Shown here: in pieces, positions 1 through 13,257 of the stretch | Layout: every line of letters starts with the position of its first letter | How positions within the stretch are numbered: position 1 is the stretch's first letter | Assembly: GCA_038496445.1 (NCBI GenBank) | Contig: JALMLS010000531.1 | Span: forward strand, 186,001 to 250,000 | DNA from: Trichosphaerium sp. ATCC 40318 | Taxonomy: Eukaryota; Protista; Tubulinea | DNA: 64,000 nt | Reading direction: 5' to 3' | Program-made: the position numbers and the translations under genes | The notes under the pieces: generated by a model | Told to the model about the DNA's origin: nothing | Databases searched by the model: none | What the model saw: only the letters and a program-made list of their open reading frames with translations

Positions 1-3000
1 TTCGACTATGATCACACCTTCGACTGTTATGGTACCATCAACATTGGCGACACCATCAACAATACAGACGCCTTCAACAATAATAACGCCAACTGCAGTT
101 GTCAGCCCTTCAACAGTGAATGTTCCAGCAACGATGATCAACCCGTCAACAGTTCAGACGCCTTCAACCTTGGCAACTCCATCCACGATACAAACACCAT
201 CCACAGTGATAACGCCTTCTTCAGTTGTGAGTCCAGCGACTGTAAATGTTCCTTCAACAATGGTTAATCCTTCAACTGTGGTGACACCATCGACTTTGGC
301 AACTCCTTCAACAATCCAGACACCTTCAACGATTGTTGCCCCAAGTACCATTATCACTCCTTCAACAGTCAATGTACCTTCGACTGTTGTTACGCCATCT
401 AGTGTCGTAGCTCCTTCCACAGTGATTACACCGTCAACGATCATTACACCTTCGACTGTACAGACACCAAGGTAACCTCACAACATTAATCCCAGTTTAC
501 TTATCCTTTGTGTAGTACAATTCAAACACCTTCGACAGTAATCACGCCTTCATCAGTTGTAAGTCCAGCAACGGTTAACGTACCTTCAACAATGCTCAAT
601 CCATCAACTGTGATGACTCCTTCCACCTTGGCGACTCCTTCAACAATACAGACACCATCGACAGTGATCACACCTAGTGCTGTGCAAACGCCATCAACGT
701 TGAGTGTTCCTTCAACAGTAGTTACACCTTCTGCAATTCAGACACCTTCAACAATTGCAACACCTTCCACTATCGCAACACCATCTACTGTTCAGACACC
801 AAGGTACACAAACATCATTTTATGTAACATAAATTAACTTTATTGTAGTACAATACAAACTCCATCGACGATTATCACACCTTCATCTGTTGTGAGTCCA
901 TCAACAGTCAATGTTCCTTCAACGATGGTTAATCCATCAACTGTGATGACGCCTTCCACTTTGGCCACGCCTTCAACAATACAGACACCGTCTACGATCA
1001 TAACACCGAGTGCTGTACAAACACCATCTACGTTGAGTGTTCCTTCAACAGTAGTTACACCTTCAGCGATACAAACGCCGTCTACTATTGCAACACCTTC
1101 CACGATTGCAACGCCATCAACGGTGCAGACGCCAAGGCACGTAACTAATGAGATTTTACTTTATTAACTTGTTACTAGTACCATCCAAACACCTTCAACA
1201 ACGATCACACCATCTTCAGTTGTATCTCCGGCCACTGTCAATGTCCCATCGACAGTGATTACACCATCCACTATTATTACACCGTCAAGTGTTGCGACAC
1301 CTTCGACGATCCAGACACCATCAACAGTAATCACACCTTCCTCAGTCGTAAGTCCAGCAACAGTGAACGTGCCATCAACGATGATCACTCCATCTACAGT
1401 GATGGCTCCTTCAACATTGGCAACGCCTTCAACAATACAGACACCTTCTACGACTATAACACCAACAGCTGTTGTGAGCCCGGCCACTGTTAATGTGCCG
1501 TCAACAATGCTTACTCCTTCCGCTGTTGTTGTACCTTCGACAGTTGCAACTCCTTCAACAATTGTAGCCCCATCAACAGTTGTTACCCCGTCTACTATCA
1601 GCACACCGTCTACTGTACAAACTCCAAGGTAAGTAATAACTATCTAAGACAAACAAATGCACCTAACAACTTTGTAGTACGATACAGACACCAGCAACCA
1701 TAGTCACACCTTCCTCGGTAGTGAGTCCAGCAACAGTGAATGTACCTTCAACGATGATCACTCCTTCGACGGTGATGGTCCCTTCAACACAGGCAACGCC
1801 TTCCACTATTGCAACCCCTTCAACTATTGTGGCTCCTTCGACAGTGATCACCCCTTCAACAATAGTTGCACCGTCCACTGTGGTAACACCATCAACAATC
1901 AGCACTCCATCAACAACGATAACACCGAGTGCTGTGCAGACACCATCAACATTGAGCGTTCCTTCAACAGTTGTTACACCTTCAGCAATACAAACACCAT
2001 CGACAGTTGCAACACCTTCCACTATTGCAACGCCTTCTACAATTCAGACGCCTTCCACCATTGCAACACCTTCAACTATTCAAACACCAAGGTACGAATA
2101 ACAATGGTACCTATTTGAAATTAACTTTATTGTAGTACTATTCAGGCACCGTCCACGATTATTACACCTTCTTCAGTTGTTGGACCATCAACAGTCAATG
2201 TACCTTCGACTATGGTGACACCTTCAACGATTGCAACACCGTCTACGATAGTCAGTCCAGCTACAGTGGCTACTCCTTCGACTGTTAACGTTCCATCTAC
2301 AGTCCAAACACCAAGGTACTCTTCGTTAATCATCTCTAGAAAGCTCAATTTTTTGTTCAGTACCATTCAGACTCCTTCTACAATGATCACACCGTCATCA
2401 GTTGTGAGTCCAGCGACTCTCAATGTTCCTTCAACGATGGTTAATCCATCGACTGTGATAACACCATCGACTTTGGCAACTCCTTCAACAATCCAGACAC
2501 CTTCAACGATTGTTGCCCCAAGTACCATTATCACTCCTTCAACAGTCAATGTACCTTCGACTGTTGTTACGCCATCTAGTGTCATAGCTCCTTCCACAGT
2601 GATTACACCGTCAACGATCATGACACCTTCGACTGTACAGACACCAAGGTACCTCACAACGGAGTAATCTCAGTTTACTTATCCTTTGTGTAGTACAATT
2701 CAAACACCTTCAACAGTAATCACGCCTTCATCAGTTGTAAGTCCAGCAACGGTTAACGTACCTTCAACAATGGTTAATCCATCAACTGTGATGACTCCTT
2801 CTACATTGGCAACACCTTCAACAATACAGACACCATCGACAGTGATCACACCTAGTGCTGTACAGACACCATCAACGTTGAGTGTTCCATCAACAGTAGT
2901 TACACCTTCAGCGATACAGACTCCTTCGACTGTTGCTACACCTTCTACTATTCAGACGCCATCAACAGTGCAGACGCCAAGGTATTTATAGAACACGTTT

Positions 3001-6000
3001 TTATTTGTTTGTATTAACTTGTTGCTAGTACCATCCAAACACCATCAACGACGATCACTCCATCTTCAGTTGTAACTCCATCAACAGTCAATGTACCATC
3101 GACTATGATCACTCCATCCACTGTAATGGTACCTTCAACATTGGCAACACCTTCAACGATACAGACGCCTTCAACAGTGATCACACCTTCTTCTGTTGTG
3201 AGCCCAGCGACAGTCAATGTTCCATCGACGATGATAACTCCATCAACTGTAATGACTCCCTCTACCTTGGCAACGCCGTCTACAATTCAGACACCTTCCA
3301 CAGTAGTCACACCGTCGTCAGTCGTTAGTCCTGCGACTGTGAATGTTCCTTCAACTATGGTTACACCTTCAACTGTAATGACACCATCAACCTTGGCAAC
3401 CCCTTCGACTATACAGACGCCATCAACAGTGATAACGCCTTCATCTGTTGTTAGTCCATCTACAGTGAATGTGCCTTCAACGATGATAACTCCATCAACA
3501 GTTATGACGCCATCTACTTTGGCAACACCGTCGACAATCCAAACACCGTCTACGATTATAACCCCAACGGCAGTAGTGAGTCCAGCTACAGTGAACGTGC
3601 CTTCCACAATGCTCAATCCGTCAACTGTGATGACTCCTTCCACATTGGCAACGCCATCTACGATTCAAACACCTTCTACAACAATAACTCCAACAGCGGT
3701 TGTGAGTCCTGCAACAGTCAACGTTCCATCGACAATGCTCACACCTTCAACTGTGAATGTACCTTCAACAGTTGCAACACCAGCAACAATCAGCACGCCA
3801 TCCACAGTTGTGACACCCTCAACAATTCAGGCACCTTCCACTCTTGTTGTACCTTCAACTGTTGTGACTCCATCAACTGTCCAGACACCATCGACAATAC
3901 AGACACCAAGGTACGCTTAACTATTCAAACAACGTATTATTTCTCTGATAAATTATTTTTGTAGTACAATACAGACACCGTCTACAACAATAACACCAAG
4001 TTCTGTTGTCAGTCCCGCAACGGTAAATGTACCTTCCACGATGATTACTCCATCAACTGTGATGACACCTTCCACATTGGCTACTCCTTCGACCATCCAG
4101 ACGCCATCAACAGTGATAACGCCTACAGCAGTGGTGAGTCCAGCAACAGTTAATGTTCCATCGACAATGATAACACCTTCATCTGTTGTTGTTCCATCAA
4201 CCGTTGCAACACCTGCAACTATCGCAACACCTGCCACAATTAATGCTCCTTCCACAATTGTGACACCATCAACGATAAATAGTCCAGCGACAGTTATTAC
4301 TCCATCAACAGTTAATGTCCCATCTACATTGATAACACCATCTACTGTTCAGACGCCATCAACGTTGGCAACACCTTCAACAATACAGACGCCTTCGACA
4401 GTGGTAACTCCGTCTTCAGTTGTGAGCCCTGCAACTACGAACGTACCTTCAACAATGATCACACCTTCAACTGTTATGACACCATCAACTTTGGCGACGC
4501 CTTCTACAATTCAGACACCATCAACTGTTATCACACCTTCTTCAGTTGTGAGTCCAGCGACAGTTAATGTACCTTCAACGATGATCACACCTTCTACGGT
4601 TATGGTACCTTCAACATTGGCGACACCATCCACGATACAAACGCCATCAACAGTTGTGACGCCATCCACAATAAGCGCGCCTTCCACTGTGATTACACCG
4701 TCAACGATAAATACACCAGCTACTGTTCAGACACCAAGGTACAAGTTTGTTATATAAGCTGTTTTCTAAAGTTCTCTGTTTAGTACAATCCAGACACCAT
4801 CAACAGTGGTCACACCTTCTTCGGTTGTGAGCCCATCAACGGTTAACGTGCCTTCTACTATGATCAATCCTTCAACTGTGATGACTCCATCCACATTGGC
4901 GACTCCTTCCACAATACAGACTCCATCTACGATCATAACACCGAGTGCTGTACAGACACCATCGACGTTGAGTGTTCCTTCGACTGTTGTCACACCTTCT
5001 GCGATACAAACACCATCTACCATTGCAACACCTTCCACTATTGCAACACCATCAACAGTACAGACGCCAAGGTATGTAGAGGTTTTAGGTTACCAGTTTT
5101 AACTTTTTGTTACTAGTACCATCCAAACACCGTCAACAACAATCACTCCATCTTCAGTTGTATCTCCGGCCACTGTCAATGTCCCATCGACAGTCATAAC
5201 ACCTGCATCCGTGGTTGTTCCATCAACTATTGCGACACCTTCGACGATCCAGACGCCATCAACAGTGATTGCACCAAGTTCAGTTGTCAGTCCTGCAACA
5301 GTGAATGTTCCTTCAACAATGGTTACGCCGTCCACAGTGATGACACCTTCCACATTGGCAACACCATCAACGATACAGACACCATCGACAGTGATCACAC
5401 CGAGCGCTGTACAGACACCATCAACGTTGAGTGTTCCTTCAACTGTTGTTACACCTTCTGCAATTCAGACACCTTCAACAATTGCAACACCTTCCACTAT
5501 CGCAACACCATCTACTGTTCAGACACCAAGGTACACAAATAACTATTTATGTAACACATAAATTAACTTTATTGTAGTACAATACAAACTCCATCGACGA
5601 TTATCACACCTTCGTCTGTTGTGAGTCCATCAACAGTGAATGTACCTTCAACGATGGTTAATCCTTCAACGGTAATGACACCTTCAACTTTGGCAACACC
5701 TTCAACGATACAGACACCATCTACGATCATCACACCTAGTGCTGTACAGACACCATCAACGTTGAGTGTTCCTTCGACTGTAGTTACACCTTCTGCAATA
5801 CAGACACCTTCAACAATTGCAACACCTTCCACTATCGTAACACCATCAACTGTGCAGACTCCAAGGCATGTGTAACATATTTATATTATTATTAACTTGT
5901 TGCTAGTACCATCCAAACGCCTGCAACAGCTATAACGCCGTCTTCAGTCGTGTCTCCAGCCACTGTTAATGTGCCATCGACAATGATCACACCTTCAACG

Positions 6001-7120
6001 GTAATGGTGCCTTCGACTTTGGCATCACCTTCAACAATACAGACACCATCTACACCAACGGCAGTTGTTACTCCATCAACGATCAATGTCCCTTCAACGA
6101 TGCTTACACCTTCATCAGTGATGGCCCCTTCAACCTTGGCTACCCCGTCAACTATTCAGACGCCATCGACTGTGATCACGCCTTCTTCAGTTGTGAGTCC
6201 AGCGACTGTAAATGTTCCTTCGACGATGATCACACCATCAACTGTGATGACACCTTCCTCACTGGCAACGCCTTCTACGATCCAAACACCATCCACTACA
6301 ATAACTCCAAGGTAATAATAGTAGTCATTTATTAAAATCACTAATGTCTTCGTAGTACTGTACAGACACCTTCTACAGTTGTAACACCATCGTCAGTTGT
6401 GAGTCCAGCAACTGTAAATGTTCCTTCAGCGATGATTACACCTTCAACTGTGATGGTACCTTCAACGCTGGCTACACCATCATCAATTGCAACACCAGCA
6501 ACGATAAATGCTCCGGCTACTGTAATCACACCTTCAACGATCAATGCCCCTTCGACAGTGATTACACCTTCCACTATTAACACTCCATCAACAGTACAAA
6601 CACCTTCAACTATCGCTACACCAAGGTACATTAGTCACAACCCCAGAGTCTAATTTCTCTAACACTTCCTTTAAAGCACAATTAATACACCTTCGACGAT
6701 TCTTACACCGTCATCTGTTGTATCACCTTCAACCTTGGTTACGCCATCAACGATTAGTGCACCTTCAACGTTGATTACGCCTTCTAGCGTAGTGACCCCT
6801 TCTGCTGTGTTTGTTCCATCTACGATGCAAACACCTTCGACTATAATGGCTCCATCAACAACAATAACACCAACAACCATCGTGACTCCCTCAACGATAA
6901 GTTCACCATCCACAATTATCACACCGTCGACAACCATAACACCTAGCACCACAGTAACACCTTCGACCATCAACGCACCCGCTACGGTAGTTACACCTTC
7001 GACTGTATTCACACCATCAACTGTGACCACTCCGTCTACAATCAACGCACCTGCGACAGTGTTGACTCCTTCGACGATAAACGTACCAGCGACTATACAG
7101 ACCCCATCAACTATAATCGC
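1..7120 (+). repeat. Coding tandem repeat: 18-nt/6-aa unit with a higher-order 7-unit (42-aa) block STIQTP-STVITP-SSVVSP-ATVNVP-STMITP-STVMTP-STLATP
   Basis: Directly visible in the translations; third codon positions vary strongly while the amino-acid pattern is kept. Confidence 0.95.
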
Positions 7121-8259
7121 ACCAGTCGCACCAACACAACCACCAACGTGTGTACCTCTCACAGAGCAACCATGTGATAACATTGGCTCGCTTCAATTCC
7201 TTGTGAACAAAATATACGCTGGAAATTGTAACATGCCTCTAAAGGGCACAGTACGTTATCCTTATCATCTACAATCCTCAAAAAACTAATATCTTAATAG
7301 CCTATATTCCAACAAAGGCTTCGCACTGCCAATTCATCTGATACTTCTAACTTCTGGGATCCTACAAGAGGTATTTTCCGTGCAGATTACGATCTTTTAG
7401 ATTTTGGACCATTGGTTGAACAAGTTGGCACTCTTTCAATCTCATCCAATAATCTATTCGCTGATGGAAATAACCTTGTCAGTGGCGTTATGATAGGCGA
7501 ATTTTCAGTAGACGTAGGCACGTGCCAAAAAAAATCCGCGAAATATTTCTTGCTTTTCTCATTTTATTTCCAGCTAAAGTTCAAGCTTCACTCCCTCTTG
7601 TCTCACTCATGATCCCTGGGTATGTTCATGCTTACTTTGATCACTGTCTAATTGCATTAAAAGGCCGCAGTTCACTGTAACATTTGTGGTGGAGGGTAGT
7701 AGAATACTCCCTCAAGGACAAGGTGAATCTCCAAATACTTATATTGGAAACACATTATTCCTACTTGGTTTTGAGGTATGTAGCCAAAGTAGATCATACT
7801 GTACCGTCAGCTTAACATCATTATTATTTAGCCTACAACTTCGAGCAGTACATGCTTTGGTACAATAGGATATCTTACTGCTGATCAATCGTTGGCTGGT
7901 CAATGTGACATGTGTGAAACTGGCTGTATGCCAAACAGTTGTCCAAACTTAGATTGTGCCACAGGTACGCTGCTTTTTTATTTACAAAGGTTTTGTCTGT
8001 ATATGCATTTCTAATCACCTTGGTCACAGGAGATTCCATGTCTCTACCATCATTCGATTTTGTTGAACAGTTCAGAGCAATTGCTGTTGACAGCTCAACA
8101 GATATGATCCAAGTTCTTCCAAACGGACCTTATCAAAGACATGTTACAAAGAATCCTACACGTGTACTAGTCACAGGTATGACATTGGTAGCTCTATTTA
8201 TAGATAAATACACAATTTTGTTGACATTCGCAGAAATAACATCAAAACTTAGGACCTAG
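1..8259 (+). CDS. Giant Ser/Thr/Pro/Val hexapeptide-repeat (mucin-like) protein, 5'-truncated by the window, with a Cys-containing non-repeat C-terminal region; multi-exon, 3' end ambiguous
   Basis: About 2,100 aa of [S/A][T/S]xx[T/V/S/A]P repeats become one frame after removing 15 introns of 41-54 nt: 472-515, 804-848, 1137-1178, 1629-1677, 2092-2135, 2316-2360, 2649-2693, 2982-3028, 3911-3964, 4739-4783, 5072-5116, 5531-5577, 5866-5906, 6312-6355, 6626-6676. The frame continues through further introns (7251-7300, 7518-7573, one near 7620-7663, 7776-7831, 7965-8029). It stops at 8257-8259 if the CAG acceptor at 8233 is used. Confidence 0.85.
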
Positions 8260-10401
8260 CATGAGTGGTACTGTTCGGAATAGTTTTAGAGTTAATGTGA
8301 TTTACAGAAACGTGTTTAGGGAAATCAAAGCTTGTATTACAGTTTAGACTCTTAACAGAGGAAAAATTAACCCCTTGGGAGCATAATGATTACTCTAGCA
8401 AGGGTATATCATTTGTACAGAGGTTCTTGCAAGTTTTATCTACACAACCTGAATTTTCAACTTTGGGCAGCGTAAGATACATCTAAAGCACTAATTAGTA
8501 ATACGTGACATAAAATAGACAACACAAGATATGGTGAAGTCGTTTTTAGATATGTCTGATTACACGTGGACACAACAACTCATTGACGCTTTAAAACTGT
8601 ATTTATTTTTCTAAGTCAATCTCTTTTATGTACTAAGTCTTGGGTAGGTTGAAAGACAACAAAGAATTAATGGACATGATTTTGTATACTGACTTTAAAT
8701 GTATCGTTTTATCCTGTAAGGACAACATGAAAGCGTGAGTGGATTGTTAACCTTACGTCATGACGTTTGTTTTAACTTTTTTTTTTAAGTTACATTGATT
8801 CAATTTGCTCTCAAACTGCAGATTCTTTCTTTGTGAGTTATGAACAAAGACTTAACTATCATTCACGTTCTTCCAGCATTAATGAGGTAGAGGGTGAAGT
8901 TGATGGTACTGACTATAGATTGGGGGATGTTGGAGGTTTGTCTTTGCAAGTCTTTGTGTTTTAGACTTTTTTCTTTTCTTCTATGTCAAATCCTTCTAGG
9001 AAGTCGTACTGAGAGGAGACGGTGGCGTTATTTTTCTAATGGCTTGGATTGTATTATCTATTGTATGTCTCTTGATAGGTATCCTTGTGTTTTCTTGAAT
9101 TTTTCTTGCTATGTTTAACCCTTTCGCTCAACAAAAGTTACTTGTACTACCTTTGGGAAGATGATACAATTAATGCGTTTGAAGAGTCATTGGGATTACT
9201 TGAAGCTCTAATACACAGTTCTTTTTTCAATGCGCCTGTTGTCCTTGTAATGACAAAACTTGATATGTTTGACAAAGAAATACAAAAGTGTCCAGAAAAG
9301 TTTAGAGAGTTCTTCCCTAGTTACAAAGGTACTAACCGGTTTACCCACGTAACTTATATATATGCGATAGGAACAATGAATTTATATGATTGCGCCATGC
9401 ACGTGTTCAATGTCATTTGTTCAAGGCTAGATAACTCAACGTGTTTCCTTGGGGCTACCTTTGCATCTTTGATAGAAAATCCTAATGCGATATCATATAT
9501 TTTAAGACAAACTCCAGAGAAAGTAGACTTGTTTAGTGACACAGGAAAACAATATTCACCTTGTATGTATAGTTGCAAACCTTTAATAATTACACTAATT
9601 CCTTCATGTCTAGTATCAGCCATCCGGCCTTTCATGTTTCCAATAAAAACATCGACACTGCTACTTGATGTAGCAAAATTAAGCCAAGAACTATACGCCA
9701 ACATGAACACAGATAATGCCTTTATTTGTTCCATACGCAAATACAGATCTCGTAAAGGTAAAACCAAAGCGTCACAACTAAAATACCTCAGAAAGTTGTA
9801 CAAATCAAACACTCATGACTTTGCTATTAAGACTGGAACAGATTGTATTAAATGTCACAAGGTAAGCTCCTATTTTCTTTTGCTTCTACTGACATAATTC
9901 AACTAGGCAATATTGATGTGCCGAGCTACATTCTTTGAAGGAGCTATTCTTTCCAACAATCTTGGGACAGATGGTGACGGCGATACAAGCATTACCTTAG
10001 AAGAAGATGCGTTCATTATCAGAACTTTTATTCAGTTTGCATACTTTGATGACATACCTTCTAATCTTGATTTGGATACTCTATTGAATCTCTTAAAATT
10101 CTCAGATAAGTATTGTATAGATTCTCTACAATCTGTCGTGATATTTTATGTATTTAATCATAGTACACGTGATAAGATTACTAACAGTGACGAAGATTAT
10201 TATCTTTCAAAAATGAGCGAATTTCTTGACTATGGATTATTGGGATGCAACTCGTTCATCATAAACAATATAACTTCATGGTTTCTCTATCAGGAATCCA
10301 AAACGCTAAACAGGTTTCTTAACAAACACAAGAAAGCTGTTGCAGTGAAGTATCTCTTAGATCAAACAGTTCTGGTGCTACAAGACACTGATGAACCTTA
10401 A
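8038..10401 (+). CDS. Divergent heterotrimeric G-protein alpha subunit fused to a C-terminal BTB/POZ domain; multi-exon
   Basis: Spliced translation gives a P-loop RVLVTGPSMSGKSKLVLQFRLL (uses a 15-nt micro-exon at 8253-8267), a helical domain, G3 DVGGSRTERRRWRYF, WEDDTINAFEESLGLL and G4 VLVMTKLD. It then reads THDFAIKTGTDCIKCHK|AILMCRATFFEG...FIQFAYFD...LLKFSDKYCIDSL, the BTB pattern. Confidence 0.85.
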
Positions 10402-12246: not shown

Positions 12247-13257
12247 ATGTCGAAGCAACGCCAAGTATCCCCAAATCAATGGTAAGGATCACGTACTACT
12301 CTATTTGTGTTTTAACACCCTAAAAGCGCACCTGTGACCATTTTGGAGTTGCCCACAGAGATTTTAGCTCATATCTTACAAAAAACAACAAAAGCCCGAT
12401 TTGCGGCTTGTCAAACCTGCAATTACTTTGCCTCTATCATTCACGACATCGTTGGATACGAAAATGTTACCATTTCAACACTATCAGAAGCAAAAGCGCT
12501 TTTACAACATGGTGCTGCTCTCCAACACACAAAAATTAAGCTGAAAGACGATTCTGTTGATATTGTCAAAGAATTTGCTGGTGTGCATAGTATTGATCTC
12601 GGATACACTTCAGTTACAGATGAAGGTGTCAAAGCACTTTCTGGTGTTCATACCATTGATCTTAGTTATTGTTGCCAAATTACAGACGAAGGCATCAAAG
12701 CACTTACTGGTGCTCACACCATTAACCTTAGTTTTTGCTACAAACTTACAGATGAAGGCATAAAAGCACTTTCTGGTGTTCATTCTATTGATCTCAGGGA
12801 ATGTTTTATCACAGATGAAGGCGTCAAAGCACTTTCTGGTGTTCATACCATTGATCTTACTTGTTGTTACAAACTCACAGATGAAGGTGTGAAATCACTT
12901 TCTGGTGTCCATGCCATTTATCTTAGGAATTGTCACAAAATTACAGATGAAGGTGTAAAAGCACTTTCTGGCGTTCATACCAGTGATCTTACTGGTTGTA
13001 TTAACATTACAGATGAAAGTGCAAAATCTCTTATTGGTGCTCATGCAATTGATCTTTCAAGGACAAATATTACAGATGAAGGTGTGAAAGTACTGTCTGA
13101 CATTCATACCATTGATATGAGAGACTGCAAAAACATTACAAATGAAGGTGTAAAAGGACTTTTGGGTGTTCATGCCATTGATCTTAGTGGTTGTATTAAA
13201 ATAACAGAAGAAGGTATAAAAGTGCTAAGAGATCATCATACTATTGTTTATAGATAG
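12247..13257 (+). CDS. F-box + leucine-rich repeat protein
   Basis: ILELPTEILAHIL...AACQTCNYF (F-box) and about nine 24-25 aa repeats of the VHTIDLSYCxxITDEGVKALSG type. ATG 12247 joins in frame through intron 12282-12326. Confidence 0.9.

Follow-up and report, generated by a model that had tools for sequence, protein, structure and literature searches.

To our knowledge, fusions of a GTPase with a BTB domain are known only for Rho, in the RhoBTB proteins. RhoBTB is an atypical GTPase; its BTB domains bind Cullin-3 and dimerise, and its GTPase domain autoinhibits the BTB part (PMC4931677). A comparable layout built on a heterotrimeric-type G-alpha is encoded in the genome of Trichosphaerium sp. 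ATCC 40318 (assembly GCA_038496445.1), on contig JALMLS010000531.1. Positions 186,001 to 250,000 of its forward strand were analysed; this stretch of 64,000 nucleotides is called the window, and all coordinates refer to it. The gene at 8038-10401 is intact and at least partly transcribed, and it codes for a complete, divergent G-alpha, a linker and one BTB domain with a helical extension.

The protein shares with RhoBTB1/2/3 an N-terminal GTPase fold with atypical or presumably impaired cycling, a linker, and a BTB domain with a BACK/3-box-like C-terminus; in RhoBTB the GTPase domain functions in regulation or binding and not as a classical switch. It differs from RhoBTB in carrying a G-alpha of the heterotrimeric type, helical domain included, instead of Rho and one BTB domain instead of two, and the bipartite insertion is absent. 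Since its GTPase is a G-alpha and not Rho, and since one BTB domain is present and not two, the protein is an analogue of RhoBTB rather than a member of the family. The resemblance is one of convergent architecture; nothing suggests a common descent of the fusion. With canonical G-alpha proteins (PF00503; Gi/Go, yeast Gpa1) it has in common the order of G1 to G5, the insertion of a helical domain after G1 and before switch I, and a region of switch II, alpha-3 and G4 that is conserved at 30-40% identity over about 110-160 aa. In contrast to these, the catalytic Arg is replaced by His and the catalytic Gln by Ser, TETCLGKS forms the P-loop and TKLD forms G4, a lipidation motif is missing, and alpha-5 passes into the linker and the BTB domain. 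Plant XLG and other pseudo-GTPase G-alpha-like proteins also have substituted catalytic residues; they are thought to hydrolyse little or no GTP and still bind G-beta-gamma. XLG proteins differ in having an N-terminal Cys-rich/NLS extension and no C-terminal BTB domain, and their sequence affinity is limited to the G-alpha fold. The BTB domain and the helices following it align best with residues 216-365 of SPOP (Z 8.6, 138 residues). However, where SPOP and the KLHL/KBTBD adaptors carry MATH or Kelch domains, the Trichosphaerium protein has an N-terminal G-alpha as putative substrate module; identity to these adaptors is just 12-18%, and Cul3-contact residues are not evident.

This architecture was unfamiliar to the initial annotation, which had been made from the DNA letters alone, and it remained so after the searches. 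A G-alpha-BTB architecture was not found described in a full-text literature search; a eukaryote-wide survey of G protein-coupled receptor signalling leaves BTB unmentioned (PMC3971589), and the paper on the Trichosphaerium draft genome mentions neither BTB nor G proteins (PMC10521059). No Atlas cluster near the protein combines both families. HMMER with the region 9130-9861 against 1.84 billion representative proteins yielded 39 matches, none of them a close relative (best E 1.4e-8, 51 bits). Ten matches were examined; all were G-alpha proteins, none had a BTB domain, and their taxa were scattered (nematode, chytrids, Tritrichomonas, Leptophrys). A metagenome scan found no relatives.

The G-alpha part

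The GTPase half was affiliated to G-alpha at the level of single exons and of the spliced protein. Taken alone, the exon region 9130-9336 matched Pfam PF00503 with E 6.8e-13 (48.9 bits, profile positions 219-281) and the region 8999-9079 with E 4.5e-4 (profile positions 192-217); 123 solved G-alpha chains of the PDB matched one exon. A profile of nine full-length G-alpha proteins aligned with aa 51-318 of the spliced protein at 133.8 bits and passed through the helical domain without large gaps. In this domain, which spans about 115 aa from the P-loop to switch I, the alignment followed the profile's helical-domain columns, and the motifs of the Ras-like GTPase core, G1 to G5, are present in order. 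Arf, Ras or another small GTPase was ruled out by the helical domain, and the database matches were all G-alpha.

The P-loop (G1) reads TETCLGKS versus the canonical GAGESGKS. It occupies aa 46-53 and spans the junction of exons 1 and 2, a reading that assumes the predicted acceptor at 8308. A second in-frame acceptor lies at 8320, 12 nt further and inside the P-loop; its use would remove ETCL and disrupt the spacing of the P-loop. The consensus GxGxxGK[ST] is preserved only in part: GKS remains, and Thr replaces both Gly upstream of it. Switch I, LNYHSRSSSI versus the canonical LRTRVKTTGI, has His181 (8860-8862) in the column of the catalytic Arg and Ser184 in that of the Mg-coordinating Thr. 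Switch II reads DVGGSRTERRRW versus the canonical DVGGQR, with Ser207 (9002-9004) in the Gln column. Among the comparators, the catalytic Arg was present in seven of nine and the Gln in eight of nine. We take these columns to be Arg178 and Gln204 of Gi-alpha-1, and Ser184 to stand at the position of Thr181, as established for the family. G4 is TKLD (9253-9264; canonical NKxD) and G5 is TFAS (canonical TCAT). The initial annotation had listed the motif order, the exchange of Arg for His at about 8860, that of Gln for Ser at 9002-9004, and TKLD as G4; the column check of G1, switch I, switch II, G4 and G5 returned the same order and residues, His181 and Ser207 in their profile columns.

Judged from the aligned columns, all elements driving hydrolysis are lost: His stands in for the Arg finger, Ser for the Gln and Thr for the Gly42-equivalent. 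The predicted ligands of nucleotide and Mg appear to be kept, namely K52/S53, Ser184 (conservative for Thr), D203-G206, K272/D274 and A327. The N-terminus, MSLPSF, has no Gly2, no Cys and no lipidation motif, and the shortened alpha-5 continues into the linker and the BTB domain, leaving no free C-terminal receptor-binding tail. Thus, a classical receptor coupling seems unlikely.

Exchanges in the catalytic columns were also seen in nearby G-alpha proteins of the databases. In P0015 (Logan), the Arg column is occupied by His, the Gln column by Glu, and G4 is TNID; in P0023 (a Tritrichomonas musculus cluster), Leu occupies the Arg column. The loss of catalytic residues therefore recurs in divergent protist G-alphas.

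The BTB part and its fusion to G-alpha

The fusion is independent of splicing, because one unbroken open reading frame (ORF), 9085-9897, spans both parts: in it, G4 and G5 are followed by the basic linker (about 75 aa) and by the opening strands of the BTB domain (HDFAIKT...CIKCHK). The BTB domain itself is split by the intron 9862-9906 between strand B2 and helix A1, through its most conserved motif (CIKCHK/AILMCRATFF). BTB comparators were obtained with a back-translated AHKxILA..S.YF pattern, which led to 13 viral loci and eight distinct domains (alignment A1), all assigned to PF00651 by Pfam (best E 2.3e-31). A hidden Markov model (HMM) of the eight viral domains matched aa 428-534 of the spliced protein at 23.5 bits, while the maximum of 2000 composition-matched shuffles was 12.6. 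A broader profile, extended by 52 PF00651 proteins, gave 14.5 bits versus a shuffle maximum of 8.5. By hhalign, the joined BTB region aligned in register from B1 to A4 (E 2.4e-4), and exon 10 alone reached E 0.024. No second BTB domain was detected in the spliced protein, where only aa 428-534 matched. Both halves of the spliced protein were hence recognised by their profiles, G-alpha at 133.8 bits and BTB at 23.5 bits, and a BTB domain behind the G domain in one reading frame, as proposed initially, was recovered.

Structure-related comparisons were carried out with exon 10, a piece that lacks strands B1-B2. Language-model features of this exon placed it in the Atlas next to ten best clusters that were all BTB (score 0.93), the first of them RhoBTB1-like; the same search with exon 9 alone was uninformative. 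AlphaFold2 (AF2), guided by a multiple sequence alignment (MSA) of BTB proteins, modelled exon 10 with a pLDDT of 71 overall and 82-92 over residues 31-90. The single-sequence model had a pLDDT of 55, and fold searches on it were uninformative. With the MSA-guided model, Foldseek found BTB proteins in all 50 of the top 50 rows (E 0.05-0.5). The best rows of VIA were seven SPOP chains (Z 7.8-8.6, 137-143 residues aligned) that covered SPOP 216-365, i.e., BTB and 3-box/BACK, and in the predicted model the helices after the BTB domain superpose on the 3-box/BACK region. Sequence and model together lead us to predict, for this part, one divergent BTB domain of the SPOP-like type that is followed by a helical C-terminal extension.

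Gene model, transcripts and the 5' end

The model comprises ten exons on the forward strand that were built from three forward frames (Table 1). Its coding sequence of 1821 nt yields an ORF of 606 aa with no internal stops, and all nine introns (42-131 nt) are bordered by GT..AG. The ATG at 8038 and the TAA at 10399-10401 fit the start and stop at 8038 and 10401 that had been annotated initially. The predicted introns 9329-9370 (42 nt) and 9563-9613 (51 nt) are in frame and stop-free; their retention would merely add 14 or 17 residues. Within the 64-kb window, tblastn detected no second copy of the model. The region is eukaryotic and AT-rich (about 36% GC), and its introns are short. The Trichosphaerium draft genome has a reported GC content of 37.7%, introns that average 75 nt, and roughly 8 of them per gene (PMC10521059); with GC, intron length and intron number alike, the gene is consistent with this genome.

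Table 1 Exons of the G-alpha-BTB gene and the adjacent exon of the repeat gene (window coordinates)
Feature	Position	Strand	Content	Support
Last Cys-rich exon of TPSTI-repeat gene	7832..7964	+		Splice 7964/8030 (GT..AG) in X1 and X2 contigs; frame continuous
Exon 1	8038..8176	+	N-terminal 46 aa, to beta-1 strand RVLVT and first P-loop residue; no MG myristoylation site	Model
Exon 2	8308..8471	+	Remaining P-loop (ETCLGKS), start of helical domain	Model, profile, motif columns
Exon 3	8519..8598	+	Helical domain	Splice 8598/8648 in X2 contig; G-alpha profile alignment continues through
Exon 4	8648..8734	+	Helical domain	X2 contig 8648-8734, one mismatch
Exon 5	8790..8935	+	End of helical domain, switch I (His181, Ser184), beta-2/3 to DVGG	Model, profile, motif columns
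Exon 6	9000..9078	+	Switch II SRTERRRW, Ser207 (9002-9004)	Pfam G-alpha E 4.5e-4; column check
Exon 7	9138..9328	+	Alpha-3 to G4 (TKLD 9253-9264), alpha-G	Pfam E 6.8e-13; PDB chains; paralogue transcript overlap 9239-9318
Exon 8	9371..9562	+	G5 (TFAS), shortened alpha-5, linker start	Junction YKG/TMNLYD mirrored in paralogue transcript
Exon 9	9614..9861	+	Basic linker RKYRSRKGKTK, BTB N-terminal strands HDFAIKT, CIKCHK; BTB start about 9817	X1 contig, splice, BTB profile
Exon 10	9907..10401	+	BTB remainder (to about 10182), helical C-terminal extension of about 70 aa (3-box/BACK-like), stop	X1 contig, Atlas, AF2

Spliced contigs of the locus were present in two RNA runs from two different studies, X1 and X2; such contigs show presence, not absence. 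The splice 8598/8648 (GT..AG, intron 8599-8647) occurred in X2, and the splice 9861/9907 (GT..AG, intron 9862-9906) in two contigs of X1 and one of X2. The X1 contigs 9715-9862 and 9905-10040 have zero differences from the window. Both runs also contained a transcript piece matching 9239-9318 with two non-synonymous changes (D277E, K282N) and with differing flanks on either side. Its 3' flank is contiguous, DYQGSMNAYD, versus SYKG/TMNLYD in this gene, where the predicted intron 9329-9370 intervenes. With its unlike flanks, this piece therefore reveals an expressed paralogue in which TKLD is kept, and it supports the junction 9328/9371. RNA support thus extends to three of the nine introns. The splicing assumed in the initial annotation was borne out directly at the introns 8599-8647 and 9862-9906 and by way of the paralogue at 9329-9370, whereas 8132-8487 and 8736-9231 stayed uncovered by RNA contigs. 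In the BTB core, the variant transcripts, which are paralogues or alleles, carried five synonymous versus two non-synonymous codon changes and an in-frame insertion of 3 nt; this small sample suggests a weak purifying selection.

Upstream lies a very long Pro/Ser/Thr repeat gene with TPSTI units (window 1-7290, forward strand). Its GC skew is strong; it occupies about the first 7 kb and extends beyond the start of the window. In both runs, contigs lead from this gene through the joints 7775/7832 and 7964/8030 into 8030-8131, and the TPSTI-repeat ORF is in frame with the ATG at 8038 and with the entire G-alpha-BTB ORF. A retained intron at 7965 would bring a stop at 8012-8014. At 8131/8132 the contigs of both runs diverge into an identical foreign sequence, in frame (...LPNGP/SATMIPAFEN). 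No splice donor is present at 8132, and 8132-8176 is without RNA cover. Splicing from 8131 to a nearby exon was ruled out, since the 30-mers of the loose contig ends are absent from the 64-kb window. Because the contigs of both runs leave at 8131, the initial 102 nt of exon 1 are common to another transcript or locus. The G-alpha gene proper starts at or before 8132, as the stretch 8132-8176 codes precisely for the beta-1 strand RVLVT, which must precede the P-loop of a G-alpha. The divergence fits a duplication breakpoint with a chimeric 5' end, a second allele or an assembly mis-join.

Of these, a mis-join at about 8131 would leave the G-alpha-BTB gene real, with its true first exon elsewhere and the link to the repeat gene as an artefact. 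The RNA contigs diverge exactly at 8131 without a splice donor, and a search of sequencing runs with 8085-8330, which includes the junction, listed no run. However, the reading frame is preserved across the join, the beta-1 strand follows it exactly, and the window holds no repeat of the segment that could mislead an assembler. We regard this explanation as highly improbable.

A young chimeric or decaying paralogue has somewhat more in its favour and is nevertheless unlikely. In this case the breakpoint 8131/8132 would have replaced the gene's own 5' end by an exon of the repeat gene, and the locus would be transcribed by read-through only, with little or no function. The passage of contigs from two studies out of the repeat gene, through 8030-8131, into the same continuation absent from the window would be explained, as would the upstream ORF in frame and the missing MG lipidation site; outside the BTB core non-synonymous changes outnumber synonymous ones, and the motifs are as degenerate as possible. 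Against decay speak the ORF of 1.8 kb over ten exons with intact GT..AG sites and no frameshift, the kept nucleotide-binding residues, the exact spliced contigs over the 3' exons and the mostly synonymous variants of the BTB core. A pseudogene decaying through broken frames was ruled out, as zero frame breaks were seen. The initial annotation had named a decaying, unexpressed pseudogene as a refutation; what was found is an intact ORF of 606 aa with exact spliced contigs at its 3' exons.

Proposed role

As a whole, the locus is best explained as coding for a non-cycling binding module on a BTB scaffold, which we consider probable. The G-alpha part would no longer cycle as a receptor-driven switch. 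It would serve as a constitutive module, GTP-bound or nucleotide-independent, to which the partners of G-alpha switch II bind. The BTB domain would dimerise the protein and, by analogy with RhoBTB, probably recruit Cullin-3; the gene may belong to a G-alpha-BTB family of this genome that is specific to the lineage. The GTP-locked state, the Cullin-3 adaptor role and the capture of G-beta-gamma, RGS proteins or effectors, all proposed in the initial annotation, are inferred.

Several observations weigh against the binding module on a BTB scaffold. The contigs entering exon 1 derive from the upstream gene and exit at 8131; hence the N-terminus and an independent expression of the gene are uncertain. 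RNA contigs leave two stretches between 8132 and 9231 uncovered, as given above, and the variant sites overall, 11 synonymous versus 19 non-synonymous, indicate weak constraint only. With Thr in place of the first P-loop Gly and at the position equivalent to Gly42, nucleotide binding is uncertain and may be lost. On exon 10 alone, Pfam gave no BTB match, which we attribute to the splitting of the domain by the intron; phmmer against the PDB and a word-indexed protein search with the same exon gave no BTB match either. Structurally, the match is of middling quality (Z 8.6, Foldseek E 0.05), and since BTB proteins made up the MSA, the fold comparison is in part circular. Finally, the phi-x-E motif for Cul3 contact is not evident in the A2-B3 loop, SNNLGTDGDGDTS.

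The last point also bears on a reading in which the domains are as described and the BTB domain serves for oligomerisation only, as in BTB-ZF or T1/KCTD-type proteins. A dimeric non-cycling scaffold would then sequester G-beta-gamma, RGS proteins or effectors with no ubiquitin ligase involved. The BTB domains of ZBTB8A and KCTD15 are likewise among the fold matches, and switch II (SRTERRRW) is well kept. The best structural matches over the BTB domain and the C-terminal helices, however, are SPOP and other adaptors with a 3-box; SPOP, KEAP1, gigaxonin, KLHL11, KBTBD2/4 and NPR1 are all Cul3 adaptors. RhoBTB, as a GTPase-BTB family, binds Cul3 as well (PMC4931677). A role in oligomerisation alone therefore appears rather unlikely.

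The binding module on a BTB scaffold could be extended to a general principle, in which lineage-specific pseudo-GTPases derived from G-alpha would recognise substrates for Cullin-3 ligases. Ubiquitination of G-beta-gamma, RGS proteins, effectors or receptors would then depend on what the permanently 'on-looking' G-alpha surface binds. We put this forward as a tentative and somewhat doubtful idea. If it were true, the RhoBTB principle would have arisen a second time and independently, on the heterotrimeric GTPase branch, and evolution would have twice joined a disabled GTPase to a BTB/Cullin-3 module. The protein would then offer a natural reagent, a one-state G-alpha surface tethered to a ligase adaptor, with which degradation-controlled G-protein partners in amoebae could be probed. 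The value of the locus is lowered by its rather degenerate sequence and by a 5' end entangled with the neighbouring repeat gene.

Further downstream, at 12334-13257, the window contains a single-exon ORF of 307 aa, similar to the giant-virus-type F-box-LRR family, that has an F-box-like N-terminus and about ten short leucine-rich repeats (ITDEGVKALSGVH...).

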